Of a stretch of DNA of 64,000 nucleotides, positions 4,671-40,000 are shown one piece after another. The position numbers and the translations under genes are program-made. Position 1 is the stretch's first letter. The number at the start of each line of letters is the position of its first letter. The stretch covers positions 117,869,741 to 117,933,740 of the forward strand of contig CM041465.1 of assembly GCA_023213395.1 (NCBI GenBank), given 5' to 3'. The DNA is from Cycas panzhihuaensis. Its lineage: Eukaryota; Plantae; Cycadophyta. The notes under the pieces were generated by a model. That model was given only the letters and a program-made list of their open reading frames with translations. It was not told the origin of the DNA and made no database searches.

Positions 4671-4673
<3 letters not shown>

Positions 4674-4709
<36 letters not shown>
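4674..4709. repeat. (TA)n microsatellite
   Basis: Direct reading. Confidence 0.95.
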
Positions 4710-4713
<4 letters not shown>

Positions 4714-9215: not shown

Positions 9216-12200
9216 ATTAAAGGGGAGAATGTTAGGGTTAATGTTTATCACCCCACTCCCACCATTTACACATATGAAGGTAAATAAGGTAAGGTTAAAG
9301 TTACTTTAGTAAGTATTATTTTATTATATTTTAAATTTTAGATGTTGAGGATGTTTTCCTCCTCCCTTAAACTATATTTTTACTAGGGTGATAAACCTTG
9401 GTGTCTTTTGACACCACCTTTATTTTGGACATTTGTAATACTCTCTCAAAGATGGATTGAATAAAAAAGATTATTGTGTTTATGCAACAATGGTTTAATT
9501 ACTTGATGTATTGCTCTACTCTATCTCTATTTTTATAAACTTTCACTTTAGGTCAAAGATGATGATTGACTGACCCATAGGTTTAATATGAATAGTATAG
9601 GTAAGTGCTCACTTATGCCTTAAGGCTTCAACAAGTAGGTCCATTTAGTTAAGGTAGATTCGTAATACATCCATCATAAACATACCTATAGAAATGGTTT
9701 GAAGTTTTTTAATAATAAAGAATATCTTCCCCTTACTAATGGGTTAGGAAAATGGCCTTTTTAAATCATAACAACTAGGGTGAATGGGGATAGTTTTTGG
9801 AAAGAGGAAAATTTTAGTGGGTTAAGGCTTAATAAGTAATTTTAAGGAAGTTGACACACCTTTAGCTTCTTCTATTGCCTAAAATTGGGTTGTTGCAAAC
9901 GCATAAGTGGTCTCAATCATTTAGATCACTCTCTTTCCCTTAACATTGTAGCATTGTATGACTTCATAGGACATTTGGCCCTTAGAAGGTTGAGTTTCTA
10001 GTTTAAATTAAGAAGTCTTTTTAGGTTGGTTTTAAGGTGACTTAGCGGGAGTTTGTTGCTAAAGTTGGGATGTCCCCTTACCTCCTTAGGCTTGAGGTTT
10101 AGGATCCCCATGATCTAGGAATGGGTCTTTATGAATTATTTATTTTAGATTAATCTTAGAAGTGGGTTGTGCTAGAGGATCCTTTGAGGATGCTAGCTTG
10201 GGATGCTAAGTCCAATAATGGGCATCTTCATGGAAATAATATTGATAAATCAAGCACCATATCTTCTTAAGGGTAGAAGGGTTCTTCTTCTAAGAATGAG
10301 GATCAAGATTATTTTCTTTAGTCTAAGGAGTATTTTGGGTTATTTGATGAACTAATTAATTCCCATATAAGGGTATAGGTAGTTGTTGTTGGCCATGGGC
10401 TAGTTGTAGCTTAAGACCATGTATAATCCACTCAAATGAGAAAATTATAGAGGTAAGAGAGTTTATCATTTTGTTAGGGATACCAATTAGAGGCCTTTGA
10501 GCTTGTGGTTAAGGCTTAGGGTCCCATAATAGAGGGAGTGCTTCATGTTAGAGTGTGGGTTTATTTTTCTTCATAAATCTTACCTAGATCTTGATGTATT
10601 TTAAGGCTAAACATTTGGTAAATTTTAAGTCATAAGTGATTACACCCATCTTAAGTACTTTTACATGGACCTCATGGTGAAAATATTGATAAATTTATCC
10701 TTTTCTAGGTCCTTAAGAAAGGTATCTTTATATAAATGTAGAAGATCATGGAAGTAATAAATGAAATCTTTATTAAGTTTATCTTGTCCTTACTTGAGGG
10801 AGAGATAGGCCTTAGCCTCACTCTCAAAAGGCTATGAAACATTAAAATATTTAACAAAAGCATCAACTAACCATTGGAAGTAGTAAAGGAACATGATGGG
10901 AGGATATAACCATTTGAGTGTATCTTCTTAGATAGTCTAAGAAATAATTTTATAAGAATATGATCATATGGATAATAATTGATGCATGCTATACAAACAC
11001 CTTGACATGGCCCTTGGGGTCTTAATAGAAAGTTCCTTTGAACTTAATAACTTTTTGGAGATGAGGAAATAGGTTGGTTTGAAGTGCCTTAAGAGAAAGA
11101 GGGCTTACACAGTAGTCAACAAAGGGGTATATCCTAAGTTGATCTAAAAGATCATTAAGTAGGAATATAGGTTGGGGTTGGTATGGGTAGGATGTATGGG
11201 CCCCACCATAGGGGGTTTTCCCTTATTGGTTACATTGATGTAGTAGAATAGGTTTGAGAATACCCCTAGCTTAGTAAGAATTTGTTGTTTAGGCATATGG
11301 ATTAGGTGTATGTATTAAGGACCCTACATAACAAGGGGAACCATAAGGATTTACTTGGTATAGATAGGGTTGGTAGGTTTGAATAGGGTTTTTCCATGTC
11401 ATAGTAATAGCTTGGATTTGAAATAGAACTCATCCTTATGCAAGAATTCCTTAAGGAGAAAACACATAAGGGGGGGTCAAAACAGGTCTAAACTACTAAG
11501 ACTAGTAGGGTGAGGTAGAAGAATTTTAATAAGAAGGGTTAGGATATGAAGGAAGATGGGGAATATATTTCTTTCTACATGGGCCTCCAATTAAATAGGA
11601 AACCCTATATGGGTGAAGGGCATCTATTTTAAAAAGAATTTCAGGGTGGGGCCTACCTTACACCTACTACTAAGTGGTACAGTCAGGCAGGACAAAGGTA
11701 AACTATGTAGGCTAAGGTATAGGTTAGGTAGGGCCTAGAGGAGGTTGAGGTATATCCCAAGGCCCTATAGGTTAAGGTTGGATAGGATGAAAGGATAAGG
11801 TAGACCATGCCTCTAGGTTTTAGGTGATAGAGGTGTAAAATCCACTTGTTAGAGGGATAAGTAGGGCCAAATAAGAAAGTAGTTAGGTAGGAAAGAGACA
11901 TACCATGAAAGAGAAAGACACATATAGGGTTGTTATTCATAAGGGTTAAGAAGGAGGGGGGGAAGTCATGAAGCTACCCCCTATGAGGTGGCCTCCTATT
12001 GTGAGACTGCTTGCTATCTAGGTTGAGAAATATGTATGTATGAACTAACATTATTTCCAAATAAGTGGAATGCATATGTAGGAGTGGAATCAACTAAATA
12101 TCCCTAAAAGTATGCCCTTAAGGTGGCCACAATCTCCCAAGGGTTTTTAAGGGTTTGGGTATAGTTAAGTAAGACTTTATCCATTTGGCACTAATCAACG

Positions 12201-18323: not shown

Positions 18324-19574
18324 CTTTTATTTCCCTACATGCACCAAAAGCTTATAAAAAGAATTGAAAATGTGGCGAAGGTACTAATCTTGCTCTCAAA
18401 GCTTCTAGACTTATAAGAAAAGCTTTAAGGACATGCTTCACCACGTATCAACTTAACGCATGCATATATATAGTAAATATAACAATTTAAAAGTAATGTA
18501 ATCAAATAGAAATTATAAATTTTAAGAAAATTAAATTTTGTAATAAGTAGAGTTTTAGAATTAGTGGAGTTGTTACCATATTCCTAATATGAATGATGTT
18601 AGTTAGCCATTTTTTCCCCTACAAAATGCTTCTAACAAAGAGAAAAGTAAATTAAGATAGGAAAATAAACAAAGAGCCAAGCAATAATGCAATAAAAAAT
18701 TGAAATAAAATAAAAGTTAAGTAGAACTAAAAAGAGAGGATAAAATACAAATGAAGTGAGGGGTATTATCCTAACTCTCAACCAAAAAAGCTAACTCATG
18801 ATGTGATTACTTGATCTAAGAAGTCTCTAACATTGAATTGCATCTAAACTCCATGTAAAAAGTGGAAGTCAATAGGAAAATTTAAAAATGAATGGGAGTC
18901 TACAAGAATTTTATAAGTATTCTAGTTACATAAGACTATCACAATTTGGATTTTACTCCTTATGGAAAGAGAGAGAGAGATTTATAAAAAATGAATTCAG
19001 TGAAAGAATAGTTTTGGGCCTAAGGTTTGGAATCAAAGCATAAGCCAATACCATGGGTATATTACCTATGGATTTGACCCAATATTAATATTAGAATATT
19101 TAATAGGAAAATAGTTTTGGTGTAATTAATAAATGAAATACCATCCTTTGTAGGATACTTCATATTTTGATTTTTATTGAAAAATAAATGATGGAGAATA
19201 GGGCAGAACATATACAAAATAATCATAAATCAATACATCATTGTTGCATAAACATAAGATGTTTTGTATTAAATCTATTTTTGTAGAAGAGAATTACAAA
19301 TTTCTAAAAGTAGGCGGTGTCTAAAGACATCAAGGTTATACACCCCTCAAAATATATAGTTTGGGGGAGGAGGGAAACTCCTCAACCCCTAGAATTTAAA
19401 TAATAATAAAATAATAACTTAACTCAAATTAACTTAAATAAAATCAACCTTAACTTATACTTACCTACACATGTAAGCACCCACATGTGTAAATTGATGA
19501 GAGTGAGGTGTGCACTCTTGGTTGGAAGGTGGGAGTGAGGTGATGAGCATTAACCCTAACATTCTCCCACTTAA

Positions 19575-20285
19575 TGATCATCATGAGAAATGTCTTCTCT
19601 TTAAACTTGTGAAATTTATACTTGAAAAAATCTTTAAAATTTTATCTTTTAGCTTGATCATTATCAACTCTTCTCATCCTTTTTGCAATGTATGTGTCTT
19701 CGCCATTGGAGGGTGCAAAAAATCTGTAAGTAAATGAAGCTTGATTCAAATGTGGAGGTGTGGCTACAACTTTGACTTTATCTCCTGAAACTTTAAGAAA
19801 ACTTTGAACTTGAACTTTGTCTTATGAAATTTTTGTGTTATGTGCAACTGTCATATCATCATATCTCTCCCCTTTAGATGGAGGATTAAGTTCTTGTGCA
19901 ATAAGATGATCATGCATTTGACTTGAATCTTCCTTGGTCTCTTCATTATAATCCACCTATTCTGGCACCTGTCTCGCATGCTCAACATCAATGTTAAATT
20001 CATTGAGGGTATCCCCCCCTAAGTAGAAATCAGAATGTACCACACGGATTTAGAAGTTGTTAGTTCACAAACTCTAGAAAAGACATTATTATCTATAGTG
20101 CAAAATAATAAAGCTAGGGTTTTATTTTCCTTTTTAATGTTTTCCTTAATACTAACATCATACTCATCTTATAGGTAACTCCAAAAATTATGTATAATAA
20201 AATAATTTTGTATTGTTTGATTCCATAGTGAAAAATTATGGCCATCAAATATAGGAAATTATATTTTATTAAGATTGATTATCAT
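19575..20285 (-). pseudogene. gag: Degenerate gag remnant of E2
   Basis: Reverse-complement homologous to the E3 gag (36312-37020) and the E1 gag. Contains multiple stops. Confidence 0.85.
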
Positions 20286-21868
20286 TTTACCAAAAATTTT
20301 AGTACATAAAAGGAATATTCTTTTACTAAGTCAAAAACCTCAATAAATGAATAAATATGACAAACTTATAAGATATAATTTTAGATAAAATTTAAAATAT
20401 AATGAATATATGAGTAAATTTTGAATATAATAAAGATCTTCTTAGCTAGGTATGGATTAAAACTTTCATGATGATAAATAAAGAAGTCTTAACCTTTTAT
20501 TTTTTTAAATGAAGGGGTATTTTAAATGTTTAAGTTTATCAGATTCAAATCTATATTAAACAATGACAGTATAATGTGAAATTATATGAATATAAAGATT
20601 AATAAAAAATCTATTCAATGGAAGTCATCGTTTTGAAAACGGGTTCCTACAAGTCAATATTTTGATGAAGCAAAGGTACAGACCTCTTTTCAAGGCCTAA
20701 TGGGAGCTTGGGGCTCAAAATATTATAAAATACTAATAAAATACTTATAGAATGCTAGAAAATAACCAAGTATAGTTTATAGGGCTGCTTAATATACTTT
20801 TCAATTGAAATTTTGAAAAATAATATATACAAAATGTGTAATAATGATAGATTGGAGGTAATTAAGTACCTCAACTTTGATGGCTTTGACAATAAGTAAA
20901 AACACTTCAAAACTTATAAATAATAGTGTTAATTCGAAGAGGAGTGAGTCAGTTTCCTAACAAAATTGACGAAACTGAATTCTGATATGAAATATAAAAG
21001 TTATAATAAAAATGGCAACAAGTACTTTTATGGTAAAAAGTTTAAAAGGTGCTAAAAAACACTAAAATGTCACTTTGGTCGATTAAAATAATGATTAAAT
21101 AAATCTTAAAAAATAAAATAAATTGATGGTAATAAAGTTTTTTGATAGTAGATGACTGCAAAATATATCTGGGTAGAAAATAATCACCCGGTGATAAAAT
21201 ATAATCCAATGAAAAATGGATTTTATAAAAATAGTTTTAAAAGATTCTAAAAATCAATGCTTAACTTTGAACTGATTAGAACCTAGTCAAATCAGCTCCA
21301 AATAGGTCATATGACCAGTCAAAATCATACCTCAAAGCATTTCTAACGCAATGGGATAGGTTTTGTTAGAAACTTATGACCCAGTGAAAAGTTATGGCAA
21401 AATGTTTCCAGGTACTCTATGTAAAATGAAAAAAAAAAAAAAAGTTTATAAAAGTTGTTGGCCTCTTTTGAAACGAGATAACGGTTATATGAGGGTTTAT
21501 ATGACCAGGGGCCAAGACTTGAGGGGCTTATATCTTTTAAACATGGATTTAAAATATATATATAATGTAGTTTAATTTTTTAAAAACTTTATATTTATAA
21601 AGGATATAAAAAATAACACATCGAATCAAATTTTGAATGTGTTGTGACCGCCGCCGTCTGTCGTCGTGCCTGTCACATGGACCTGCACACCGATGCCAGA
21701 CCTATGAACTAGGCCACAATGAGATCGTCGCAACCACATAAAGACACTGCCTACACTATGCTCTACCTCTATCATGCGGTTTGACTCAAGGTTCGACAAC
21801 AGGGCAGGTAGGAAAGCTGAAGTCTACTCTTCCTTCTCGTTCATAGGGGAGGCCCGAGAGAATCCGCT

Positions 21869-21907
21869 ATGGGAAATGGTACAGGAAGTTTTGGTAAGAG
21901 GAGAAAC
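21869..21907 (+). pseudogene. RPL37: Captured 5' fragment of 60S ribosomal protein L37 mRNA
   Basis: atgggaaatggtacaggaagttttggtaagaggagaaac = MGNGTGSFGKRRN, versus the plant RPL37 N-terminus MGKGTGSFGKRRN. Preceded by a pyrimidine-rich, 5'UTR-like sequence. Confidence 0.8.
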
Positions 21908-22471
21908 GCAGAATCGGGGATCAAAAATATTTTCATGAGCAACTGGAATTTCGTCTTTGAGGCCCTATAATTAGAGTAAAATTTGGTTATGTTTTTTTTA
22001 GGAAATTAATTACTATGGTCCTTCCAGGATTAAGTTTATAGCAGAACATCAAAAATTTATAGGAGGTAACATAAGAAAATCTGATCACCAAGTCCCCGTG
22101 GAGCTATAAAGTCATGATGGACGTGGCCATGACCGACTTATTGTGACTCCCTAAACAACCACCAGCTAAATGGGTGTCTCTACCACCGACGTAAATGAGA
22201 AATGACTGGACACAGTGTTCATCTATCTCGATCAAGAGTTAGAGTAAGAGACGGGGGACGTACAACAAGCTACACGTGATATGGATATGGGTCTCTTATT
22301 TTAAAAAATATTTTTGGTTTTGTTTAACAAGGGGGAGAGATAATTATTTTGTTAGACCAAGCTTGCCAGTATGCATTAAAGGTTGAAAGTTGAGTTCACA
22401 AGAGATTTCTTCTTGCACTCTAGCAGTAGTAGTGGTTGTGGTATCAATGGAACCAAGAGTTTTCCTGTGTT

Positions 22472-22591
22472 GACCGAGATAATGGAACAATTACCTTAAT
22501 GAACACTGGCATTGGAATGACAAAGGAAGAACTTGTTGATTGCCTTGGAGCAATAGCCCAAAGTGGAACTGCAAAGTTCTCAAAAGCATTG
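22472..22591 (+). pseudogene. HSP90: Captured fragment of an organellar HSP90 (HSP90-5/HSP90-6-like) ATPase domain
   Basis: [40 protein letters not shown]. The 'DCLGxIAQSGT' motif is typical of plastid and mitochondrial plant HSP90s. Confidence 0.9.
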
Positions 22592-22960
22592 ATCGGTTCT
22601 AACAACACAATGTTTGAGATCTGACAGTTATTCACAACAATATTGAAGATCAATGCAGTATAATGGATCCCTTATTCTTTCATCTTCTATACCTAGCTGC
22701 AGTATTTGTGGATCCCTTATAGCTGTACAATCATAAGTATAAGAAACCAAAACTATGATTGCTAGAACTAATTCAGGATTGAAAATGTGGAAATTTGTAT
22801 AAGTTTTATGTTAATATGGATCACATTTTCTTGCAAAGTTATTCACTTTCTTTTGATTTTTGTTTAATGGTTTATGGATTTGAGAGTATAAGTTTGCTTT
22901 TCTGATTAGTTTGCTAAATCTTATAGAAGAGTATTTATATTTTTAAAACAAACAAAAAAA

Positions 22961-23096
22961 ATGTCTGATATTTCAAAGATGTTTTTGGAAGCAAAGGATA
23001 ATGTGAAGGTCTTGACAACTCTTGAGTGCTATTTCAAGATAATTTCTAGTGAACCTTTGCCAAGGGTTCTTGAAACAATAAGTCCTATGATGAATG
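22961..23096 (+). pseudogene. Captured axonemal dynein heavy chain fragment, part 1 (DHC_N1 tail; DNAH10/I1-alpha-like)
   Basis: MSDISKMFLEAKDNVKVLTTLECYFKIISSEPLPRVLETISPMMN. The frame continues at 27581 once the nested element is removed. Confidence 0.8.
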
Positions 23097-26000
23097 TGTT
23101 AGAATATTAATGAACATTTGATTTGTCCCACATGCAAGTGGATCCTACTCTTCCATCATGACTTGTATTATAAATACATAACTTTCTGTATCATATTGTA
23201 ATGATATTATAATGATATTTTCTTAATACAATGGAGGTACCTTAAGGGTACTGTTCGATCCTATGGAGGTGTGTTTCATTCTGTTTGTAAATATTATTTA
23301 TGTAGGTTGATTTCCAGCATGGTATTAGAGCTAAGGTGAAGTCAAAGCCAAGTTAAGCGAGGTGAAGCCAAGTTGAAGTGAGTTTGAGTGTTGATTGGTG
23401 AAACCCTAATTTAGGTGTATGTGGAGGTGGCTCCATAGAGCTTTATTCATTCCTGTTCCCATTTTTCAATGCCATTTGTATGCCCCAGAGATGTTATGAG
23501 TCCTTGGCTGAGCTGTGGAAGAATGTAAACCCTAGTTGTAGAACTGTGAAGTCATAATACGATCATTTTAAAAGGTATGATACTTATTGACTGTGTGGTA
23601 TTTGCCATCCTACATGCATATATATCATTGCTAGTTGATGATTTCATTCTGAACCTGCATAATGATATTTTGTTCACCTATTAGTATATTTGCGTCACTA
23701 TGTATTTTGCCATATCTGCATGAATCTGAATCACCGAGATGTTGATGCGACCTGTGTTCTATTATCACCGTACAATAATTGCCCAGCCATGATATTAAAT
23801 AAAGGTGCCCGTCAGCTATGATATTACAACCGTTGGATATATGTAGTTGCCCATTTATTAGATCATTGGTTTAGGTTTTGAGCATTATATTGATATGTTG
23901 CAGCCAATTCATTATTCACTATTTTGTATTACATCTGTGTAAGTATCATTAATTACCGTTGTTTTTGCCCTCGTGCCTATGTGAATTTGTAATCTGTGTT
24001 AAAATTCTTCAGCCAGAGGTCTTCTATTAACCCTATGTGATTATTCTACCATCTTTTCTTATAAACTTGCATCATGTATGTGTCCTGTACTCTGTTTGTC
24101 CACCTGCGTGATGATATTCTTCATCGCCCAGTGATAGATAATATTATTGTGCCACCATTTATCTATAACTTCATCACTGCCTATTAATGTATATGTGCAA
24201 CTGTCATTAATACATTACAGTCGACTGAAATATGTCATTAATATTTGCACTGCCCTTTCTACATTTGCAGTCTTTTATTTTTGTAGTTGCCCATTGAAGA
24301 CTTAATCCGTGGCCATATTTATAAGCTTTCGTGTGATGACTTAACGAAGCCCATGTAAAATTATTTTTTGCCGAACTTATATCTGATCTCTGCCCATGGA
24401 TCATTAACATTTGCATGATATATTCATTACCTATTTGATGTATTTGAGTAATCATGTTGCTGTGTCTGTTTGCATATAATCGTCTAGCCCATGTTGATCT
24501 GATCAATGCGATGATCTTTGAACCTTATACATCGCAATCCACCTGTGTGTAGCCATTCATAGCTTCATCATCTCTGCATTGTAGCATTTGCCCATATCCG
24601 TGTAATGACATTGCCACTGCCATTAATATATTGCAATCATCGTTAGTCTATTCTCCATTACGACCATTGAATATTATGCATTTCAATTAATTTTGTTTTC
24701 TTTTGTTATGCTTCATAAAGTCATTTTTTATATATATTGAACGTTCAATATTCAATTTATATTGTTGCTTGCTATTTCGCCATTGTATTTTATCAAATCA
24801 TTTTTGATATTTGAATGCCCTTTTAAGATTATTTTTTAAGTCACTTTGGTATATTGATACCTTTTTTGTTAATATACTTTGTCGCATTTTTTGACCTTAA
24901 TGAGATGAGAGTGTATACCCTTTAATGGCCTAAACATATTTTATAAGACCTCATATTGATATATGGAGATTAAGACAATTTTGAAATGTGCCAAAGTGGT
25001 GATGTATGCATGGGTTAGATGGCAACATGAGGTGTATTTGAGAGGCATGTTGGTGATATGGATAACTCTCTAGTATGAATCTTTATAAGAGAGTTTTATG
25101 ATGATGTAAATGGGTGATTTTGAGGCCTTGCATTATTCTCTTGCAAGTAATTGTGTGATAGGCAAGGTTGCCAATGTTTGATGCTCTCTAGCATAAAAGA
25201 GTAATTTGGGTGATGTTGCGATATGAGGTATCTATTTGAGGCTATCATACATGGGTTACACATGAGAGAGTGAGTTGGGTGAAGAGATATCTATTGTTTC
25301 TCTTGTTTACATAAGTAAGTTGGGTGACTTAGTACTCTTTGGAATGTGATCTTTATGGGCATGATAATTTGACATATTTTGATGGTGTATTCTTTTTGAT
25401 GGACAAAATTGAGGGCATGTCAAGGGCATGAGAAAGGTAATAAGAAGACATTGTAATCAAGGTAATGATTAATAAGCAAATGAGTTATTATTACAAGGAA
25501 GCAATCTTTGGCATTGAGTTGATAGTGGAGTCCTTACAGTTATGGCCTTATGGCAATATGAGTGAGTAGTTTTTTGAAGTTCTTGGTTAATGTGTTGATA
25601 TGATGACATGAGATGAAGTTTGAGGTTTTTCATTATTCATTTGTATGCGATTATATGAGAATACTTTGATGATATGAGGTATTGATGAGGTGACTGTTTA
25701 GGCCTTCTTGTATGTATTTCATATGGGAGAGTACCTTGGTAATGCGAGATGACATTAACTTATATTTTGCACTCTATTGGCTTAAGACTTTTTGTGGATA
25801 TATGATGAGGTATGTGTTTGCATGAGAGAGTTGATGAAGTGATGACTTGGCAATTATGAACCTTGTAACATGTGAGGTTACATGATAAGGTTGGATACTT
25901 TATTGGTGAGTTAAGGAAGAAATTAGGCATGTTTCATGATGTGAATAGGCAAAGAAGGATGAGTTTTTGTTGAAGTTACATGAGTTGAAAGTGCAATGGC

Positions 26001-27575
26001 ATGAGGTGTGTGTTTTAGGCAATCAAGTGAAGTGTGTGTCTTGGTAGCGACACATGACATGTATGATCATCATGAGATTTATGAGGCATCGATTTGGTGA
26101 AGTGAGTGTTTGGATTCTATGTGACTGGTTAGTAATATATGAAATGGATAAGACAATGATGTGATAATAAAGTCAATGATGTGAGATATGAAACATGAGG
26201 AAATTTGTTAAGAGTGATCAATAGGCAAGTTACCAATGATAAGTGAGTTTATTGATTGAAAAAGGGACGTGGCATATGGACATGGTATTTACAATCATGG
26301 AGGATAATGATGTAGTTATATATGCTCATGAAACAAATGAATATTACTTAAGGGATTCATTTCTTCTAGTACCTAAATGCAATAGTGAAAACTACTTCTT
26401 TTGGATAATTAAAATGAGATGTTTATTCATAGCTAGAGGTTTATGGAAGATTGTTACTGATGAATATGATATCCCCAATGATGAAGAAGAAAAGCAAATG
26501 CTTGAGAAGAAAGATAGAGAAGCATTCATTATTATTCATGTTGCATTCAATGAGATTGATCTTCCTTCCAAATTCTATTTTGTTATTCCTATGACTACAT
26601 GCAAGTAATGCTAAAGAAGCTTGGGATTTTCTAAGGAAAGTATTTGAACAAACTCCTGAAGAAATACAACAAATGATTGAAAAGGTAATTAAGGCTAGTT
26701 ATGGTACAGGTATAACGAATGAAGAAAGTATCATCAACATTGATGAAACAACATGTGAAGATGAAGAATGTCTGAGTACTAACAAAATTTCTACTATTAA
26801 ATGCATTAATGAGATTACAGATGAAGACATTCAAAATGATGAATTGATTTTAAGAGAAATTGAATCTAATGATCCTATAAAGGATGAGTCTTATATTGAT
26901 GATATTCCTTCTTTAAGCATTGATTCAAGTTTAAAGAGTATGCAAGTTGATCAAGACTCCACTCCTAAGATTGAAGAATTCACTGTTGTTCATGGTGATC
27001 AAGAGTTTATACAGGATAATGATGATAGGCAAGTTGTGATTAAAGATGGTTACTTATAGGATCTTCATCAGACTAGACCAGCTCCAATAAAGAAACATGA
27101 TTTATACTTACTAGAGCAGCCACATCAACATTGTCACTATAGAATTGAAGATGGAAATCAAGCTGAAGATATCATCTTACAAAGGCATCAATATAGAATT
27201 GAAGATAAAAATCAAGATGAAGACATCATTCTGTAACAAATACATCATTACAAGATTGAAGACAAGGATCAAGTTGAAGACATCATTCTCAAGACATTTT
27301 TAAAGACAAAGCATTGGAAATATAAACGACCCAAATGTACATTCAGGGGGAGTATTAGAATATTAATGAACATTTGATATGTCCCATATGCAAGTGGGTC
27401 CTACTCTTCCATCATGACTTGTATTATAAACACACAACTTTGTATATCATATTGTAATGATGTTGTAATGATATTTTCTTAATACAATGGAGGTACCTTA
27501 AGGGTAGCGTTCGATCCTGTGGAGGTGTGTTTCATTCTGTTTGTGAATATTATTTGTGCAGGTTGATTTCCAACA
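23097..27575 (+). mobile_element. Non-autonomous gag-only Copia-derived LTR element (TR-GAG-like) nested in E2
   Basis: LTRs 23097-23319 and 27353-27575. PBS tggtattagagc at 23320, PPT 'agggggag'. Perfect TSD gaatg. Confidence 0.93.
26351..27345 (+). pseudogene. gag: Degenerate Copia gag N-terminus with an acidic, repetitive extension
   Basis: DSFLLVPKCNSENYFFWIIKMRCLFIARGLWKIVTDEY...KKDREAFIII is DUF4219-like. ~51-bp tandem units occur at 27139-27295. Confidence 0.8.
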
Positions 27576-27580
27576 GAATG

Positions 27581-27780
27581 CTCTTTGTATAGTCTAGATT
27601 CTTTCACGTTACTATTCATATGATTCTCACATGGGCTATCTTATGGAGAATATAGCACATCAGATTGCAGAAATAGTCTTGAAAGAGATAAATCTCAAGA
27701 TTTTATTCAAGATGCATGCTAGTGATGCTAAATGTAAATTAAATATGGTAAAAAATGTATTAGACTCTTGGAGGTTTTAA
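27581..27780 (+). pseudogene. Captured axonemal dynein heavy chain fragment, part 2
   Basis: ALCIV*ILSRYYSYDSHMGYLMENIAHQIAEIVLKEINLKILFK...VLDSW matches the recalled DNAH10-type motif ALRMVWIISRHY...RM..LMERIA.EIA.RV...NL..LFK. Confidence 0.8.
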
Positions 27781-28199
27781 AGATAACTTACAGGAACAAA
27801 GTGGCTTCAGTGCACATAAACATATAATCATGGAAGAGATATTTCAAAAATTTCTTCAAATAATAACAGTAAAAAAACATTTAATGGAAGAATATAACCA
27901 TATAATAGAGCCGCAATAAAACCAAGAAATTTTTTAAATATATTGATAGAAATATATCAAATAAATGAAATGCATATATATTTGTATCTGAAATATTTCA
28001 AATATGTTAGAGCAGAAAACCAAGAAATATATGTTTAAATCTAAAATAAAACAAGGAACCTCATCAACAGATGTAGCAGATTTGTAGTAGGTTGATTTCT
28101 GAAGATAAGATCTTCTTCCACACAAGTCAAAGCTTCAAACAGATTTCTCTAGTAGATAGATTTACTATTATATATGGCTTGTTGGGTTGAATATGCACC

Positions 28200-28510
28200 A
28201 AAACTTGCAGATCTGAAAAAAGAACTTGAAAAATGGTCAAATATGTGATAAAATATATAGATCTAAAAGAAAACTTGAATAAATATTATAAATCTGAAGT
28301 AAGTATTGCAGATCTAAAGTAAATATTATAGATTTGGAGCCAATATTACAGATCTGAAGAAAATATTATAGATCTAAAATAAATAAACCATAAAATGATA
28401 AAATATTTGATAAAATAAGCATATTTTAAGAGTATATAATAGATCTGAAAAAAACTTTGAATAAATATTACTTGCAGCTGTGCTCCTGCATAGATCTGAA
28501 AAAATATTAG
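28200..28510. repeat. Degenerate ~20-bp AGATCT-containing tandem repeats in the E2 leader
   Basis: Repeated 'aatattatagatctaaagta'-like units; the reverse-complement homologue is in E3. Confidence 0.75.
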
Positions 28511-29358
28511 ATAAATAGATAAAAATATACTTGAAAATTATCAAATATATGATAGAAATATATAAAACTTGTTGATAAAACCTCTATAGAGTGATAAAAA
28601 CTTGATATTTACTATTTGTAGCTATGCACCTATATAAATATGAAAATAAATCTGAAATATATTTCTTACATCATAAGTAAAACTCAAGAATAATCAAATC
28701 TCTGATAAAAAATACAAGAAACTTATTGATAAATTTTACGGAAAATGAATATAACCAATCTTTGCTTGATTTTAAGTAGATTTGCTATAGATATCAATAA
28801 ATCTTCTTGCTCTTCATAAAAACTTCAATAGGCCAGCAAAATGCTAATAGATCAACTAGATCTAATATCAAATGTAAGAAAATAAGCGATGGAGAACAGG
28901 GTAGAACATATACAAAATAATCATAAATTAATATATCATTGTTGCATAAACATAAGATCTTTTGTATTCAATCTATTTTTGTAGAAAAACATTACAAATG
29001 TCTAAACGTATGCAGTGTCTAAAGATACCAAATTGCACACCCCTCAAAATATATAGTTTGGGGGAGGAGGGAAACTCCTCAACCCCTAAAATTTAAATAA
29101 CAATAAAATAATAACTTAACTTAAATGAATTTAACTCAACTTAACTTAAATCAAATCAACCTTACCTTATACTTACCTACACATGTGAGCACCCACATGT
29201 GTAAATTGATGAGAGTGAGATGTGCACTCCTGGTTGGAAGGTGGGAGTGGGGTGATGAGCATTAACCCCAACAATTTTATATCTTAAACTTAAGTTAAAC
29301 CTTATTAAGGAGGTATTTTCTTTAAAAGTTATATAACATCTATTCTAGTTTCTTAACC

Positions 29359-29600
29359 TTAACCACTTTATTTTTCTACTTTTAATTTTAAATTATGTTT
29401 ATTTTACAAGTATCTTTAGAAATTAATGGAGGTAAATTAAACCTCTTTATTGAGATATTTAACCTAAAAGTTGTGTGACATCTCTTTTAGCTTTTAAAAC
29501 TTAACCAATTTAATTTTCCACCTTTAATTTTAAATTATATTTAATTTATGAGTGTGTTTAGACATTTAAGGAAGTAAGTTAAATCTTATGGCATCTCTCC
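29359..29600. repeat. Two diverged direct repeats, ~140-bp period
   Basis: 'ttaaccactttatttttctacttttaattttaaattatg' at ~29359 and 'ttaaccaatttaattttccacctttaattttaaattata' at ~29501. Confidence 0.6.
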
Positions 29601-32199
29601 TTAGCCTGGCAAGATCAATATCCTTAATGATCTAGGATTTTTAGGTTTTAGATTATATTAATTCAATCAATATATTTTGTTACCCATGTACTTTTGAAGA
29701 TATTTATAATACTAGAAGAAACCTAACTAAGGGGTTACTTATAGTAATTGAGAAAGTTTTAACAATAAAAGCATCTAACAGAATAAGATAAGCAAGAAAA
29801 CACTATAAATAGAGGAATAAAAAATGTAGAAAGTTCTTGTAAAGTTACATAAAAGTCATATTTATAATCCATCAAACTTAGGTGGATACCTTATTTTTCC
29901 ATTGACTAAGATTAGACTCATCATCAACTAAGGACATACACACCCATCTACCACAATAATAGGTAAATGTTAGTAGACATGCTTATAAATCTCAATGACT
30001 AAATTTGAAATAAAAATAAGAAGCACATATGTTTAATTCATATGTTGTGATGAATGGAGACTTATCTGGTTGTGGAAAATACTAGGGTTGATAGAGAATA
30101 CCATATAGTTGGCTTTGTAGACTTTGTCATGGCCAAGGGTGTATTTCTTTGAGTATTGGGTATAGAGATTATTTTCCTTGCATCAATGCATTTCTACAAG
30201 TGGAACATAAACTAGGGTTGATAAGGGCTCTATTAGAGAGTTTGCTATTATAACCTACTGTGACTTATTGAAATGTAATCACTAACATTAAAATTATATC
30301 TATCAAGGTTGTTAGCATTACATAGAGTCTCGATGAAAGGATGATGTCTATTATATTATAAACTCAGCCTCAATAACCTTTGTCATGGATATTTCTTATT
30401 TTAAATTTCATGGTAACATTATTTTCAAGAGCATTTAAATGCATTCCTTGAGCCCTGGCATATATGTATTGATAACTATTTGATGATCCAGGTTTTGACT
30501 AATTCAATTTTATAAAGTTTAGAACTTATTTATATAAGATTCCACCAATGTTACTTGCCTCAACCATGTGATTTGATTAAAAAAAGACTAGTTCCAAGTT
30601 TCTATATATTATTTAGGAAAACTATTATAAAAGTATACCCATGATTGGTTAGTGAGGTACACATATTATCATCAATAGAACTAATAATGTGCCTTACTGT
30701 CAAGGTGGATAGAGATAAATATTAATTAGTCATCGACTAATATTGGATTGAGTGAAAATTAGTATTCTAACATGTTTTTCCAACTCCTTGCACTATCTTT
30801 GTTAAGATCTAGGTCAACTATAGGTATTTTAATCTTGTGATGGAGTAATTGTTATTATGGTGGCATGGTTAGAGGTGAAGGAGAACTGCTTACTAAAGGA
30901 GGACCACTTGACAAGCTTTAGGTGCTTATTAAGTTGGATGACATGTTTAATAATTAAGCATAGATCTATATCACCTAGTTCACAAGAGAAAATATGTCAT
31001 TCTTTGTGGCCATCTCATTCTTAAATTTAGTAAACTAAGTCTCCAATATAGTGATTTAGTCAACCCAGGTAGGAGCTATCATATGTATTAGAAATAAATG
31101 CCCAATACAAGTCCAAGATTATACAAGACTATGAAACATAAAGATATATATATATGAACAAATAAATAATTATATGTAGCAATATAAAACACAAGCTACT
31201 TATGGGAAATAACCACATTCAATTATATTATGATAAACTAATACATATTTATAGTATATATCACTACTTAGTTGTTCAATCAAAATTTATGAGCTATTTG
31301 GTTAACTAATGACTAGTTACATAAAGAAGTATGCATATTATAAACCCTTAGTAAATATCAAATGGGTAATTACATTAATTTAATATTTCTATTAGTTAAT
31401 ATTATTGAGGTTAATAGTTACCACCCCAGTCCCACCTTCTAACCAAGAGTGCACACCTCACTCTCCTCAATTTATACATATGGGTGCTCATATGTGTAGG
31501 TAAGTATAAGGTAAGGTTGATTTGATTTAAGTTAATTTGAGTTAAGTTAAGTTATTATTTTATTGTTATTTAAATTTCAGGGGTTGAGGAGTCTCCCTCC
31601 TCCCCCAAACTATATATTTTGAGGGGTGTGCAACCCTAGTGTCTTTAGACACTACCTTCATTTTGGACATTTATAATACTCTCTCTACAAAAATGGATTG
31701 AATACAATGGATCATGTATTTGTGTAATAATAATATATTGATTTATGATTATCTCTTTTATATTCTGCCATGTTCTCCATAATTATTTTTCCATCATTTG
31801 GTATCAGAGCTATTTTAGGCCTGCATTATTTTCCTTCATATGGTATTAGAGCAGGTTGATCTATTAGCATTTTGCTAGCCTGTTGAAGTTTTTTTATGAA
31901 GAGTAAGAAGATTTATTGATATCTACAGCATATCTACTCACAACCAATAAATACTAGTTATTTTCATTTTTCTCCAAAAGTTTATTAGCAAGTTTTTTAT
32001 ATTTTTTTATCAGAGATTTAATTATTCTTAAAGATATACTTGTGATATAACAAATATATTTTAGATTTTCTTTAGATTTATGCAGGTGAATAGCTACAAA
32101 CAACAAATATCAAGTTTTATCACTCTACAAGAGGGTTTATCAACAAGTTTTATATATTTTTATCAAATATTTGACATTCTTCAAGCATATTTTATCTAT

Positions 32200-32700
32200 T
32201 TATCCAATACTTTTTCCAAATCTATGCAGGAGCACAACTATAAGTAATATTTATTCAAAGTTTTCTTCAGATTTGCTATATATCCTTTAGATATGCTCAT
32301 TTTATCAAATATTTGATAGCTTTTTGGTTTATTTTGTTTAGATCTACAATATCTACTCAAGTTTTCTTTAGATCTACTATTTTTTTAATTATTTCACCAT
32401 TTTTTGGTTATTTGCTTTAGATCTACAATATTGGCTATAGATCTGTAATATTTACTTTATATTTATAACATTCATTTTAGATCTTCTATATATTCTTCAT
32501 ATCTACTTATTTCATCAAATATTTCACCATTTTCTAATTTATTTATTTCAGATCTATAATATTTACTTTAGATTTGTAATATTGGCTATAGATCTGTAAT
32601 ATTTACTTTAAATTATAATATTTATTCAAGTTTTCTTCAGATCTGCTACATATTCTTTTAGATTTGCTTATTTTATCATATATTTGACTATTTTTTCAAG
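32200..32700. repeat. Degenerate ~20-bp AGATCT tandem repeats in the E3 leader
   Basis: Repeated 'tagatctataatatttactt'-like units. Confidence 0.75.
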
Positions 32701-33661
32701 TTCTTTTTTTAAAGCTGTAAGTTTTGGTGTATATTCAGCCCAATAAGCCATATATCATAGTATATCTGTCTACTGGAGAAATCTGTTTGAAGCTTCAACT
32801 TGTGTGGAATAAGATCTCATCTTTGGAAGTCAATCTGCTATAAATCAGTCACAACTAATTACCAGGTTCTTCATATTTATATTCAAATTTAAACATATAT
32901 TTTCTTACTTTTTTAATTTATTTTCATCAATACATTTAGATCTACTCTCTCAGAACTTAAAACTTTGTAGATCCATGTGTTGGTAGCATTGAAAGCTTGA
33001 ATCTCTAGATTAATCTTTACCATTTTAGGTCTTTGGATATTCGACCTTTTCCTAATTTAGTCCTTTTACAGGCATATTTTTGTTTATTTTTTAAATAAAA
33101 TAGTCTATAAGCAACCCCAAACAGAAACAAAATCTGTAGAAAATGTAACTTTGTTACCCTATTCTGGTGCTTGCATAATACACTATCTTCAAGCCTTTGC
33201 AGCAATTAGCATGCATGGTATACACATCATCTAATTCAAGACTCCTTATATACTTTATATCTACATTTGATATCTCATATACTTTGCAAGGTACATTGTC
33301 ATATTTAAATGTATGTGAGTTTTGTTTAATAAGAGGTTGCACTATTCTTAGTTAGAGATTTGATCTAATTTCTATTACTGGTCTGATAAGCACTCTTCCA
33401 TTTATATGAACATTTATATTTATAAATATAAACATTATTACCATACAAACATACACTTACATACAAATATTATTACTAGTATATTGCTTCACACATTACA
33501 TTCAAGCATTAGTATACTTTTAATTGCTAAAAGTCAAAGGTTGTTTCAACCATTAACAACAAAAGCCATCAATACTTATTTTAAAACCTTCTTGATACAA
33601 ATCAAGAAACTTTTGATAAAAGGCATCAACAATAGTAAAAGTCTTCCATGATTAAGGAAAA

Positions 33662-33862
33662 TAACCATCGACCACAAATTGCATCTTCTACATCACGTGC
33701 ATCCTTAAACTCGATAAAGCAATAGCCTGGAGGCCTGGGAGGAATCTTCAAATTAATATCAACAATAGGTCCATTCTTATAAAACAGGTCTTCAACTTCC
33801 CATTCCCGAATATCACCAAGTAGATTGCCAACATGCAAGGTTTGACTGGCTCAACTGCTCAC
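33662..33862 (-). pseudogene. Captured 5' fragment of an ASF/SF2-like SR splicing factor (SR30/SR34 family) RRM1
   Basis: (V)[63 protein letters not shown], continuous with no introns. Confidence 0.92.
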
Positions 33863-36311
33863 TGTCACCGACCCTAACAACCTTCACTGGTAATTATTCT
33901 CTCAAAGAGATCAAAAGAGCTCCAAAAGACTGTCTGGTGGGTGTTGGTTGAACTAAACAAGCTCCATCGAAGGGAATCTAAAGCTTCAACTCTTGTTTTC
34001 TTTGCAGACCCCTAGATATGAGAATCACATGTCGATCATTTTTAAAAGGAGATAGACAAGAAACTGAATCAATAGGCCACCCTTCATAGGGTGCAAATCT
34101 TGTTACTGGAACTGGTTCCTCATGTCTTAGTTCTTCATCCTACCTATGCACGCTCTGACCATCTGCGTGCTATGAACTGCATGCTCCTCATCCTCTTGTA
34201 GACTGCAGACTTGAACTGTGTGCTTTCACTTGATGTAGTTCAGTCCCCTCACTAACGTATTATTCAAGGACCATCCCACTAAAGCTAAGTTGTATCATTT
34301 CTTCAAGCTATCGATCTTGTCACTGTCTGTAGCTTATATAGCTTGCATATTTTCTTTTGATAAGCTATAGCTTACATAAGTTGTAGGCATCATAATATTC
34401 ATGTCTCTCCTCCCATTCCTGCTTTCTTTACACTCTCAAAGTAATTTGTAACTATTTCACTTGCTTGCAGTAAGGACAGTTTGGAATCCTTTAAAGCTTT
34501 GACAACACTAAAACAAAGTGAAGATCATTTATATCCATCATTTAGACATCTTAGAAAACTGCTGGGAGGTGGAGTCTTACTATTAAGCTCACCATTTCCT
34601 TCATGAGGAGAAGGTGTTCGCCTTGATTCAAAAGAGAATTTCCCTCCAATTAAGGCTCACCTAGAATGGTCATTCCCTGAGGAATTCAACCCTGCAAAGG
34701 ACTACCTCCTTATCAAGTATTGGTTATATCCACCAGCTGACAGTTTGCAATCATTGCTGAAGACTGGTGATAGTGATTCTGCTTAATTTGAAGTTCTATT
34801 GCATGGAACATTAACTAAGCTGATAGTTTGCAATATGCTGCATCTTGACCATTCTCCCCCTCAGATCTCCTATGATTCCATCTGCATTGGCGCGTGATAG
34901 ATAGGTGCAGCTATAGTTGCATGGCAGCCGCATTCACGACAACACCATTTCTCCATTCATAGATTCAAAATTTTATTTTTTATTTTAATTTTTATAAGGT
35001 TTAAAAAAATTAAATTAAATTAAATACTTTTTGAAATCTAATGTTTAAAATCCTAGCCCCCTTTACATTTTAGCCCTCAGTCATATACTACTCCACGTGG
35101 CCTTTAGCGCATTACTTAAAAGGGTTTTCTCAATTTCATAAAAGTTTTTCTTTTATTTTTTTTATTTTTATTTTTTTTACATAAGGTACTTGGCAAAGTT
35201 TTACCATAACTTCTCACTGGGTCATCGGTTTCTGATGAAACCTATCCCATTGAGTCCATAATTTTCTGTAGTATGATTTTGACTAGTCATATGACCAATT
35301 TAGAGTTGATTTGACCCATTTTCAATCAGTTTAAAATCGATCATTCTTTTTTGAAGATATTTTTAACTATTTTCATAAAAAGCTTTTTTTGTCATATTAT
35401 ATTTTATCACTAGGTGATTATTTTCTACCCAGATCTATTCTACAGTCATCTATTATCAGCAAACTTTATTACCATTTATTTATTTTATTTTTAAGATTTA
35501 TTTTAATCATTATTTTAATCAACCAAAGTGACACTTTACTGGTTTTTAACACTTTTTAAATATTTTATCATAAAAGTACTTATTGCCATTTTCATTATAA
35601 TTTTTCTGTTTTACATCAGAATTAAGTTCTGTTAGTTTTGTTGGGAAGCTGATTCACTCCTCTTTGAACTAACACTATTATTTATAAGTTTTGAAGTGTT
35701 TTTATTAATTTTCAAATCCATCAAAGTTGAGGTACTTAACAGCCTCTAATCTGCCATTATTACACATATACATATATTATTTCTCAAAATTTTCAACTGA
35801 AAATATATGAAGTAGCTCTATAAACTTTATATGACTATTTTACATCATTCTATAAGTCTTTTATTAGCATTTTTATACTATTTTGAGTCCTAGGCTCCTG
35901 TTAAGCCTCAAAAGGAGGTCTGTACATTTGGTTCATTCAAATATTGACTTATAGGAACCCGTTTTCAAAATAGTTAATCCCATTGAATAGGTTTTTTGTT
36001 GATCTTCACTTTGGTGTAATTTCATCATATTATGACTTTGTTTAGTACAGCTTTGAAGCTACTAAACTTGAGTATCAAAGTATATCCTAGCAAGCTTATC
36101 TTAAGAACCTTTTATTGTTCATCTTCAAAGTTTCAATTTAGATTTACATAATTAAAAGAATCTTAGTTATATTATAATTTATTTATATATTCATCATATT
36201 TCAAATTTTATTTGAAATTATATCTTAGAATTTTCTCATATTTATTGATTTATTGAGTTTTTTAACTTAGTAAAAGCATATTCTTTTTTATGTACTAAAG
36301 TTTTCAGTAAA

Positions 36312-37020
36312 ATGACAATCAATCTTGATTAAGTACAATTTCCTATATTTGATGGCCATAATTTTTCACTATGGCATAAGACTGTGTAAAATTATTTTAT
36401 TACACATGATCTTTGAAAATACTTACAAGATGAGTATGATGTTAGTATTAAGGAAAATATTGAAAAAGATAATGAAGCATTAGCTTTACTAGTTTGCACT
36501 ATAGATGATGATGTCTTTTTTAAAGTTTGTGAACTAACAACTTCTAAATCTATGTGGGACATTTTGATTTCTACTTATGAGGGAGATACCCTCAATGAAT
36601 TTAACATTAATGTTGAGCATGCCAGACAAGTACCATAATAGGTGGATTGTAATGAAAAAACCAGAGAAAATTTAAATCAAATGTATAATCATCTTGTTGC
36701 ACAAGAACTTGATCCTCCATTTGAGGTGAAGAGATATGATGATATGATAGTTGTTCACAACATAAAGTTTTCAGAAGACAAAGTTCAAGTTTAAAGTTTT
36801 CTTAAAGTTCAAGTTGACAAAGTCAAAGTTGTAGCTACACATACACGTTTGAATCAAGCTTCATTTACTTACAGATTTTTTGCACCACTTAATAGTGAAG
36901 ACACATATATTGTTAAAAGGATGAAGTAGGTTGATAATGATCAAGATAAAAGACAAATCTTCAAAGTTTTTCTTAAGTATAAATTCCACAAGTTTAAAGA
37001 GAAGACATTGTTCGTGATGA
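36312..37020 (+). pseudogene. gag: Degenerate gag remnant of E3
   Basis: MTINLD*VQFPIFDGHNFSLWHKTV*NYFITHDL*...EKDNEALALLVCTIDDDVF...SMWDILISTYEG. Confidence 0.85.
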
Positions 37021-40000
37021 TCATTAAGGGGGAGAATGTTGGGGTTAATGCTCAGCACCCCACTCCCACCTTCCAACCAGGAGTGCACACCTCACTCTCA
37101 TCAATTTACACATGTAAGTGCTCACATGTGTAGGTAAGTATAAGGTAAGGTTGATTTGATTTATGTTAATTTGAGTTAAGTTCATTTAAGTTAAGTTAAG
37201 TTATTATTTTATTGTTATTTAAATTTTAGGGGTTGAGGAGTTTCCCTCCTCCCCCAAACTATATATTTTGAGGGGTGTGCAACCCTAGTGTCTTTAGACA
37301 CTGCCTTCATTTTGGACATTTGTAATACTCTCTCTACAAAAATGGATTGAATACAATGGATCTTGTTTTTGTGTAACAATGATGTATTGATTTATGATTA
37401 TATCTTTTATGTTCTTCCCTATTCTCCATGATTATTTTTCTATCGTTTGGTATCAGAGCTATTTTGGGCCTCCATTATTTTCCTTTAAATATTACCTAAT
37501 ATTTCCCTTTTAATGTCTATCCATATCATATATAATTACTTTAAATATGATGTCAGGTCTATATAAAATCTAATTATCTATTGGAGCACATAGATAACTA
37601 GCTACTATATTCACTAATCCTTTAGAATGGTCTTCCTATACATGGTTGATCAACATTTGCCTACCAAGAAGCCTTTAACTACTTCCATTCTACCTATTTT
37701 TGGCTCTCCTAGTTAAGGTCATACCTCTAAGAGAAAATTTAAGCTGAAAACCCTTAGCTCCATCTATTGCACCATGGAGCAAAGGCATAAAAAATATTAG
37801 TTGAGTAGAAACATGTGACAAAAAACCTTTTTTTTAAGGCAATGGCTCTATTTTAACATCCTATTGAATTAAGGTCTAAACTTCATATCATTAGAACTAT
37901 CCTAAAATATCTTTAAAGCATATAAAATGACCATTCTTGGAAAGACCCATGAATTGTCTTTGAAACACAACTAATGATGCTTAATTTTAATGTTGTATAA
38001 GAGAGATATGGTCATTTTATTGAGCATAGGTCCTTAAAACAAAGAAAAATAAAAGAGTAAAAAATAAAGTTGTAATCCATTTGCATCATGGCTCAATTAT
38101 TAATATAACCTCCTAAGGGGATAATGGACTTTAAGAAACATTATAAAATAATTAAATGATATTTTATAAAGTTTATAATCTTTATAATATTAAAAAATAA
38201 AAGAACATTTTATCATTTCATCATTTTGACCTATGCATGACCCATGAGGGTATGTTTAATTCCCACTCATTATTTCTTAATGGATTTCAATCTAAGGACA
38301 CATTTCTAAGGTAAATCTAATACTTTAAATGTAATAATAGCCTTACATTCTCCTGAAACACACTCATAGAGAAGAAAATAATAGTAAAAAGTGTCCAAAT
38401 TCTTTAATAAATTCTGAATAGGTATTTAATCTATTTAATGAGTTTCCCAACCTTTGAATTTATTAGAACAACTACCCAACAATACCAACTCACCTCTAAA
38501 TGCCACTATCTCACTTATTTATCATTTACAATCACCAATAAAGCTAAAATTAAATGAAATATAGGGGGGAATAGCTAAATTATTCATCAAAACTCTACAA
38601 ACCCTTAATATTTTATTGGCATATAATTATGGCTCTCACAACAACTTGTAAATTTCTTTCTTCCTCTCAGATTTTCCTTCTAATATATTGTATCTCAAAA
38701 AACAAAGTAGATCTTTCTATCACAGTAATTTTTCCATCAAATGACAATCATTCAATCTTTAACTTGTTGATGGTGTGGCACCCAACAAACCCAATGAACC
38801 CACTCTTATCATTGCACTCTCACATTACCTATAGAATTACTTCATAAAGTATGGGTTCTCTCAATCAATAATCTCTACATCAAAGCCCTAACATACTATT
38901 CACATAAGCTAATAAACCATATGTTACTCCAAGCCATGCTATAATACCTTAATTTATTCTATCCAATATAATAGTAAGTAAAATTGTGGCCTTCTTACCA
39001 TATCGCTGGCTTCATAGGGTGACCAAGCATATATTTGAAGCCTTTATCTTGGGCTCACATTTAACACCTATATATATACTAGTAAAACATGGAAATAACC
39101 AATCCAAAAATAAATTATACATATAGAAAACCTTCTTGGGATTTGAGGTAACTATAACATCTATACTTTGAAAGGATTTTCATGTATAGGCACCAACATG
39201 ATTTAGGCTCATGACACCAACATGCTCTAAGCGACCTAATAAACACAGTTCAAAACTATCCACAACCTATAATAGAACTTTATTAATAAATAGACAGACT
39301 ACTACTTTTATTATTCACAAACATGCATATTTAAAATAAGTTCTAAATAAACCCTTAATAGGCAGATACACTCATAGTCTTGTAGTCTAATGAGGGGCAA
39401 AACAAGTTTAAACTAGGGATGTAATTCCACTTTCTAGAAATAAATGCCTAATATAGTTCCAAGATCATATAAAACTATGAAACATAAAGACATGTAGATG
39501 AACAAATAAGAAATAATATGCATAAATATATAAAAAAAGCTACTTGTGAGCAATGACCACTTCCAATTATATTATGATAAACTAATATATATTTATAGTA
39601 TATACCATCACTTAGTTATGTTATTATAATCTAGGAGCCACTTAATTAACTAATGATTGATTATATGATGAATTGTATATGATATGACCCCCTAATATAC
39701 ATCAAAGGGGTAACTATAATAATTTAATATTCCCATGGGTTAACATTACCTAATATTATGGACAAAAAGGGATTTCAAGACGAAAGATATAGGGAAGAAG
39801 GGGTATAATGAAATAAGATTAACAACACAAAATAAGATTTATCAAATTAGTGAGTAGATAGACAAAATGGGACTTTAAGAACTGGAAAATAAAGTTGAGA
39901 AGAGGGGAGGAGGGTATCTATAACCTATCAATCCCTAAAAATGTGTAATAATTTTAACTAATATACTTAAATGAGTATGAAAATCTTGATAAAATAAGAT

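Follow-up and report, generated by a model that had tools for sequence, protein, structure and literature searches.

We analysed a 64-kb stretch of genomic DNA (hereafter the window; positions are counted from its first base) in which part of an axonemal dynein heavy-chain sequence of the DHC1/DNAH10 type lies, cut in two by a small long terminal repeat (LTR) retrotransposon, within a larger LTR element that we call E2 (Table 1). The dynein stretch is a dead cargo fragment and not a gene in place. We consider it probable, at roughly 0.78, that ~330 nt of spliced DHC1 messenger RNA (mRNA) were copied in reversed orientation into a Copia derivative, and that this copy was later split and decayed.

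Identity and state of the dynein fragment

Removal of the nested element together with one copy of its target-site duplication (TSD) returns the two halves to a single frame of 111 codons (~330 nt), as a sequence-only reading of this DNA had proposed with a count of ~110. The left half translates as MSDISKMFLEAKDNVKVLTTLECYFKIISSEPLPRVLETISPMMN and ends with the codon AAT at 23093-23095. Across the insertion, G 23096 and CT 27581-27582 form a GCT (Ala) codon, and from 27583 the frame continues as LCIV, a stop, ILSRYYSYDSHMGYLMENIAHQIAEIVLKEINLKILFKMHASDAKCKLNMVKNVLDSWRF and a second stop. At the left junction cct atg atg aat g passes into the element start, TGTTAGAAT, and at the right junction the element end, TTCCAACA, is followed by gaatg ctc ttt gta tag; the letters near 23090 run cct atg atg aat g + TGTTAGAATATTAATG, and those near 27570 run GATTTCCAACA + gaatg ctc ttt gta tag. 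That the interruption is a nested LTR retrotransposon, also part of the sequence-only reading, is borne out by the TSD GAATG and by the 92% identity of the LTRs. The repeat search paired 23096-23319 with 27352-27575, likewise at 92% identity.

The halves were searched separately, and the joined codons were compared position by position with two orthologues. Against the Pfam profile DHC_N1 (PF08385), the left half (45 aa) aligned to positions 79-122 (E = 4.6e-6) and the right half (60 aa) to positions 130-187 (E = 6.6e-6), adjacent to the left half and in order after it; the halves scored 26.0 or 25.5 bits, each just below the 28.3-bit whole-protein cut-off. In the PDB, the left half matched residues 392-435 of Chlamydomonas 8glv_Cn, a 4625-aa axonemal chain (E = 1.5e-7), as well as DNAH10 380-423, while the right half matched DNAH10 431-489 (E = 1.3e-6) and 8glv_Cn 442-499. 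Residues 436-441, which read ALRMVW in relatives, are filled exactly by the six intervening codons (A, L, C, I, V and a stop). Because the dynein match is collinear over the insertion, chance is excluded. Good PDB matches were limited to DNAH10 and the Chlamydomonas chain; the search with the halves returned no chain named DNAH2, and outer-arm chains appeared at E 0.34 only. For this reason, and as judged from the best structure matches, the fragment is assigned to the alpha chain of the two-headed inner-arm dynein I1/f (DHC1/DNAH10). One eukprot relative is named 'Dynein-1-alpha heavy chain'. The earlier suggestion of a DHC_N1 tail of the DNAH10/I1-alpha type agrees with these matches and with the land-plant relatives found.

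An exhaustive search of representative proteins identified as closest relative a 565-aa partial protein from the lycophyte Diphasiastrum complanatum, in which the fragment corresponds to residues 323-431 (protein P0001). Identity was 61% to Diphasiastrum, 56% to the liverwort Riccia fluitans and below 48% to algal-grade sequences. Over the 111 codons, 67 residues are shared with Diphasiastrum, 61 with Riccia and 53 with an algal-grade protein, and the lycophyte and the liverwort share 75 with each other. Judged by these identities, the fragment is a land-plant DHC1 sequence closer to that of a vascular plant than to that of a liverwort. The representative search with the 60-aa half returned 12 matches, all of them partial proteins; full-length plant DHC1s were not among them and are probably hidden behind 50% cluster representatives. 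A word search with each half gave no candidate sharing three 5-residue words, and one with P0001 residues 300-450 gave Riccia and unnamed partial proteins, with no gymnosperm.

The 111 codons contain one stop (TGG>TAG) and zero frameshifts. The lycophyte and the liverwort agree at 75 positions, of which the fragment has kept 72% and altered 21; eight of these 21, the stop included, are explicable by a single C>T or G>A. Several conserved residues are replaced (ERHFK to ECYFK, RMVW to CIV-stop). The observed/expected ratio of CpG is 0 in one half and 0.22 in the other. The fragment represents ~2.5% of the protein. Homology ends at 22961 and 27773, and no open frame into the linker and AAA+ motor domains was found. 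Partial dynein proteins covering up to 967 N-terminal residues revealed by tblastn no other heavy-chain part in the 64 kb, and no open reading frame of at least 150 aa occurs anywhere in the window. When the flanks were aligned at the DNA level with the orthologous upstream and downstream exons, scores did not exceed those of shuffles, while positive controls did. An 'FKT' in another frame upstream of 22961 was accordingly rejected as chance.

Missing introns and the carrier element

A scan of metagenome contigs with protein P0002 recovered genomic contigs of DHC1 orthologues in two groups: group A (L003-L006, with a spliced transcript, L001, 100% identical) and group B (L008/L009). The identity of each group to Diphasiastrum and to Riccia is ~65-70%, matching that between the lycophyte and the liverwort, and A and B are ~67% identical; on these values the groups are assigned to two deep embryophyte-grade lineages. 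Phase-0 introns follow ...ERHFK and ...MERIAxQ in both groups, which have another intron after ...GRDPR; group A has a further one just before VSELSKMF. The fragment is uninterrupted at 23038/23039 (TTC AAG/ATA ATT), the intron site after HFK, and at 27663/27664 (CAT CAG/ATT GCA), the site after RIAxQ. Its left half thus covers 'exon N' (22961-23038) completely and reaches into 'exon N+1'; its right half completes 'exon N+1' (to 27663) and adds the initial 110 nt of 'exon N+2'. Two orthologue introns have left no trace, their positions being those of the metagenome contigs and not of the host's own gene. Splicing could not have removed introns at the stage of element RNA, since the cargo runs antisense to its carrier. 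Given both missing introns and the antisense cargo, which would be unspliceable in element RNA, the fragment is most likely a copy of spliced host mRNA; the earlier conditional idea of capture as RNA thereby gains support.

A circular (back-spliced) RNA origin was rejected, since the sequence to the left of the exon-start boundary does not resemble the dynein exons downstream. At the same position, group A contig L003 has an intron at 4089-4243 with a GC donor (CAG/gcaagt ... ttgcag/GTT).

The dynein piece lies within the variable slot of E2 and therefore arrived as cargo of a gag-only Copia derivative, in agreement with the sequence-only reading, which had made it the cargo of an outer element; an LTR pair, the TSD ATTTT and the slot itself define that element. 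The orientation of E2 on the minus strand follows from its polypurine tract (PPT) at 19562-19572 and its primer-binding site (PBS) at 28859-28872. E2 and its sister E3 have in common the LTRs, the first ~850 nt after the PBS and the last ~2 kb with a Copia gag remnant, and their homology ends sharply at 21627 and 28016 in E2. Neither E2 nor the nested element has protease, integrase or reverse transcriptase (RT) between its LTRs; both retain gag remnants only and are therefore non-autonomous derivatives. In E2 the slot also holds a scrap of HSP90, which lies ~340 nt from the dynein scrap and, like it, runs antisense to the element. The rule of antisense cargo and the layout of scaffold and slot hold in this window. 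One candidate element, 21640-34950, was rejected because the range runs from the slot of E2 (minus) into that of E3 (plus).

Further observations concern the same elements. A third, more diverged gag-only Copia member, E4, lies at about 3400-9500 on the plus strand; it matches E2 at 4040-4185, 6412-6801 and 8466-9508, which implies a slot of its own at about 4186-6411. The first 683 nt of the E2 slot (21628-22310) have 43% GC, a CpG observed/expected ratio of 0.79 and 25 CpGs, within surroundings of 24-35% GC and ratios of 0.1-0.3. This segment matched nothing in PDB or Rfam and nothing significantly in Pfam; it could be organelle-derived DNA, an unmethylated island or an insertion of much later date. 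In the nested element, ~2.9 kb (23330-26240) separate the PBS from the gag remnant, which sits near the 3' LTR; this layout is the same as that of E2 and E3, so the interval may hold cargo too.

Table 1. Features of the dynein fragment, the nested element, the carrier E2 and its sister E3 (positions in the window)
Feature	Position	Strand	Remarks
Dynein heavy-chain fragment (DHC1/DNAH10-type), left half	22961-23096	+	antisense to E2
Dynein heavy-chain fragment, right half	27581-27773	+	antisense to E2; no homology past 27773
In-frame stop TAG	27595-27597	+	Trp (TGG) in all relatives
Nested non-autonomous Copia-type LTR element	23097-27575	+	4.48 kb; complete small element
Nested element LTRs	23097-23319 and 27353-27575	+	92% identical; Kimura two-parameter distance (K2P) 0.082 (MAFFT alignment)
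Nested element TSD GAATG	23092-23096 and 27576-27580		perfect, 5 bp; flanking sequence
Nested element PBS TGGTATTAGAGC	23320-23331	+	tRNA-iMet type; 11/12 bases match; directly after left LTR
Nested element PPT CAGGGGGAG	27344-27352	+	purine tract directly before right LTR
Nested element gag remnant	26243-26605	+	weak Retrotran_gag_2 match
E2, non-autonomous Copia-type LTR carrier	19175-29273	-	LTR pair and TSD
E2 TSD ATTTT	19170-19174 and 29274-29278		perfect, 5 bp; ATTTT/TATTG... and ...CCAACA/ATTTT
E2 3' LTR	19175-19561	-	pairs with 28873-29273; 91% identity; K2P 0.095
E2 5' LTR	28873-29273	-	pairs with 19175-19561
E2 PPT (reverse complement AAGTGGGAGAA)	19562-19572	-	adjoins 3' LTR
E2 decayed PBS	28859-28872	-	11/14 bases of TTTGGTATCAGAGC; tRNA-iMet type
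E2 conserved leader	28016-28858	-	common to E3
E2 conserved 3' scaffold	19573-21627	-	no pol; 82% identical to E3 35158-37443
E2 Copia gag remnant (in scaffold)	about 19975-20200	-	counterpart of E3 36417-36635
E2 variable cargo slot	21628-28015	-	no counterpart in E3 or E4
E2 slot item: HSP90 N-terminal ATPase-domain fragment	22472-22597	+	~42 codons; E 2.5e-8 to PDB HSP90 N-domains
E3, sister element	about 31403-37464	+	77-82% identical to E2 in common parts
E3 intact PBS TGGTATCAGAGC	31799-31810	+	counterpart of decayed PBS of E2
E3 gag remnant	36417-36635	+	Retrotran_gag_2, E 2.8e-8
E3 cargo slot	32913-34961	+	E2 homology stops at 32912 and 34962
E3 slot item: SR-protein RRM1 scrap	33629-33850	-	well preserved; antisense to E3; RRM_1 E 3.4e-10

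The window as a whole has 31% GC and a CpG observed/expected ratio of 0.18, and Rfam and tRNA scans of it returned nothing. Two tandem copies of a 142-nt unit (29291-29574; 77% identical) directly follow the right end of E2. A direct repeat pair, 73-77% identical, has one member just upstream of E3 (31089-31404) and the other ~2 kb downstream (39435-39748), and may represent the LTRs of an older element hosting E3. On the minus strand, 55400-58600 contains heavily decayed remnants of an autonomous Copia element, with gag_pre-integrase at 57458-57736 and stop-free stretches resembling integrase and RT.

Proposed history and its alternatives

We propose that ~330 nt of a spliced host mRNA from DHC1, the DNAH10 orthologue, were copied in reverse orientation into a non-autonomous Copia-type LTR retrotransposon, where the copy came to lie between leader and gag remnant. 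The copying would probably have occurred during plus-strand synthesis, by a template switch of RT from element DNA onto a co-packaged host mRNA; such a switch would yield antisense cargo. Selection against splice and poly(A) signals in sense orientation may have contributed to the antisense bias. E2, already carrying the dynein and HSP90 scraps, would then have inserted at its present site (TSD ATTTT), and a second small Copia-derived element (TSD GAATG) would have entered the dynein scrap soon after, as judged from a K of 0.082 versus 0.095. Neutral decay of all parts would have followed, partly through C>T and G>A changes, including the one that converted a Trp codon to a stop. We infer that the host still has a living donor gene.

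Several observations weigh against this history. The cargo does not adjoin the PBS, so a mechanism of priming at the PBS is not directly applicable, and the intron positions come from embryophyte-grade metagenome contigs and not from a seed plant. Furthermore, the left end, 22961, falls on exactly the same base as an exon start in group A, with 59 of 78 nt identical onward and no homology to the upstream exon before it, and the right end is followed by GT (TGGAG/GTTTTA), a possible donor at a Ser codon past which homology is absent. The two ends are likewise compatible with a genomic exon flanked by introns, with a partly spliced pre-mRNA, for instance one that retained the upstream intron, or with a host gene of different structure. 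Capture at the DNA level, possibly as filler DNA at a break, or from un- or partly spliced pre-mRNA would have brought in a host exon with flanking intron pieces, and the flanks are indeed AT-rich and plant-intron-like. Nevertheless, the host gene would then need to miss both introns common to two deeply diverged orthologues and, in addition, to have an intron absent from both orthologue groups. There is no AG before 22961, a GT after the right end has a chance expectation of ~5% per position, and the placement of the boundary had some freedom. We therefore regard this origin as unlikely.

Compared with capture of spliced mRNA, the remaining explanations fare worse. Introns in giga-genomes can exceed the window, and at no more than 362 nt the stretch has roughly the length of an exon, so it could be a surviving exon of a DHC1 gene or pseudogene broken up by transposons at its original locus. 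However, it lies inside a single TSD-bounded LTR element between PBS and PPT, in the variable slot of the family beside the HSP90 scrap; it crosses two intron positions without introns, and the 22 kb upstream and 36 kb downstream of it contain no adjoining dynein exons. Of all readings we give this one the least credence. Only slightly more credible is a functional antisense module, in which the element, when transcribed, would give rise to small RNAs or antisense dynein RNA with a regulatory effect on the host DHC1. In its favour, the cargo runs antisense to the promoter of the element, and fragments captured by transposable elements (TEs) were reported to raise donor-gene methylation in gymnosperms (PMC13477047). 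On the other hand, the copy has decayed, a 4.5-kb insertion interrupts it and, as in silenced DNA, its CpG is depleted; the LTRs have diverged by ~9%, and the protein-level identity of the copy to the nearest orthologue found, from a lycophyte, is 61%. No sign of conservation or of further copies was seen, the sequence searches being blank, which proves nothing.

The sequence-only reading had also allowed that the host might lack swimming sperm, as gnetophytes and conifers do, and that the transposon had then kept a remnant of vanished flagellar machinery. The AT-richness of the window, with the GC and CpG values given above, resembles the 29% GC of Welwitschia (PMC8275611), yet 1-Mb windows of Cycas range from 27 to 48% GC (PMC9023351). 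The fragment has one stop, no frameshift and 72% of deeply conserved positions, a decay that fits the LTR divergence of E2 (K about 0.095) and is consistent with a capture little older than the insertion of E2 (K2P 0.095), as opposed to neutral decay over hundreds of millions of years. This modest decay relative to the E2 LTRs also indicates that spliced DHC1 mRNA existed when the E2 lineage was active, and a spliced donor mRNA must have existed at the time of capture. A host with living dynein genes would agree with this, and a lineage that had been without flagella for hundreds of millions of years would agree poorly. TBLASTN finds no dynein heavy chains in conifers or angiosperms (PMC9237703). 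A fossil of this kind is consequently improbable, more so than DNA-level capture; were it true, for example in an AT-rich gnetophyte, a spliced DHC1 transcript would have been made long after the presumed loss of flagella.

If the history proposed above is correct, it bears on both the host and the cell type. The dynein scrap suggests that the host makes swimming sperm, and a spliced fragment of a land-plant DHC1 implies that two-headed inner-arm dynein was present in the host during the active period of the element. To our knowledge, dynein heavy chains in such plants are made only in sperm-forming cells. Activity of the element in the male gametophyte or spermatids is a reasonable deduction from dynein expression: provided that dynein is transcribed essentially only in sperm-forming cells, the inherited capture of its RNA places reverse transcription in the male germ line. 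In a milder variant, more likely than a relic of lost machinery and put forward tentatively, the host is cycad-like and the dynein cargo records heritable retrotransposition in sperm-forming cells, as a fossil sample of their transcriptome. DHC1 and DHC10 are retained in every land plant that has swimming sperm (Lucas and Geisler, PMC9237703), and Cycas and Ginkgo keep flagellar genes of which Gnetum, conifers and angiosperms have lost many (PMC9023351). The literature thus agrees with the earlier expectation that, among seed plants, dynein heavy chains occur only where sperm swim (PMC9237703, PMC9023351), so that a DHC1 fragment points to a cycad or Ginkgo (PMC9237703).

Comparison with known systems

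With DHC1/DNAH10 proper the stretch shares the DHC_N1 tail, collinear with residues 392-499 of the 8glv chain and 380-489 of mammalian DNAH10, but it is a small, stop-containing part of that protein and not a gene. Like a processed pseudogene made by a long interspersed nuclear element (LINE), it is most likely an intron-free, decaying copy of an mRNA. It differs from one in lacking a 3' poly(A) and a long TSD of its own, and in being ~330 nt from the middle of an mRNA of ~13 kb, held inside an LTR element. No A-run follows 27773; the sole A-run, at 22945-22960, is on the side of the mRNA 5' end.

Retroviral oncogene transduction resembles the proposed capture in that it takes in host mRNA by template switching during reverse transcription and yields cargo without introns. 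Retroviral cargo, however, is in sense orientation and selected for expression, whereas the cargo here is antisense, which would call for a switch during plus-strand rather than minus-strand synthesis, or for an orientation filter. Bs1-like LTR retrotransposons of maize are also non-autonomous carriers of several unrelated pieces of host genes, acquired via RNA as is proposed here. The cargo of Bs1 is in sense orientation and forms an expressed chimeric open reading frame; in contrast, the cargo described here is antisense and dead.

The closest parallel is with the exon fragments captured by TEs in gymnosperms, which number ~400,000 per genome and come from donors enriched for reproductive functions (PMC13477047), and the structure is an ordinary instance of this already reported gene-fragment capture. 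As in the Platycladus comparative study (PMC13477047), a decayed, non-functional coding fragment lies inside an LTR retrotransposon, more than one fragment is found per carrier, and reproduction-linked genes are over-represented among the donors there too. That study leaves orientation unmentioned (the word 'antisense' occurs 0 times), whereas here the fragment is antisense, intron-free by proxy, housed in the fixed slot of a gag-only Copia family and itself split by a later nested element.

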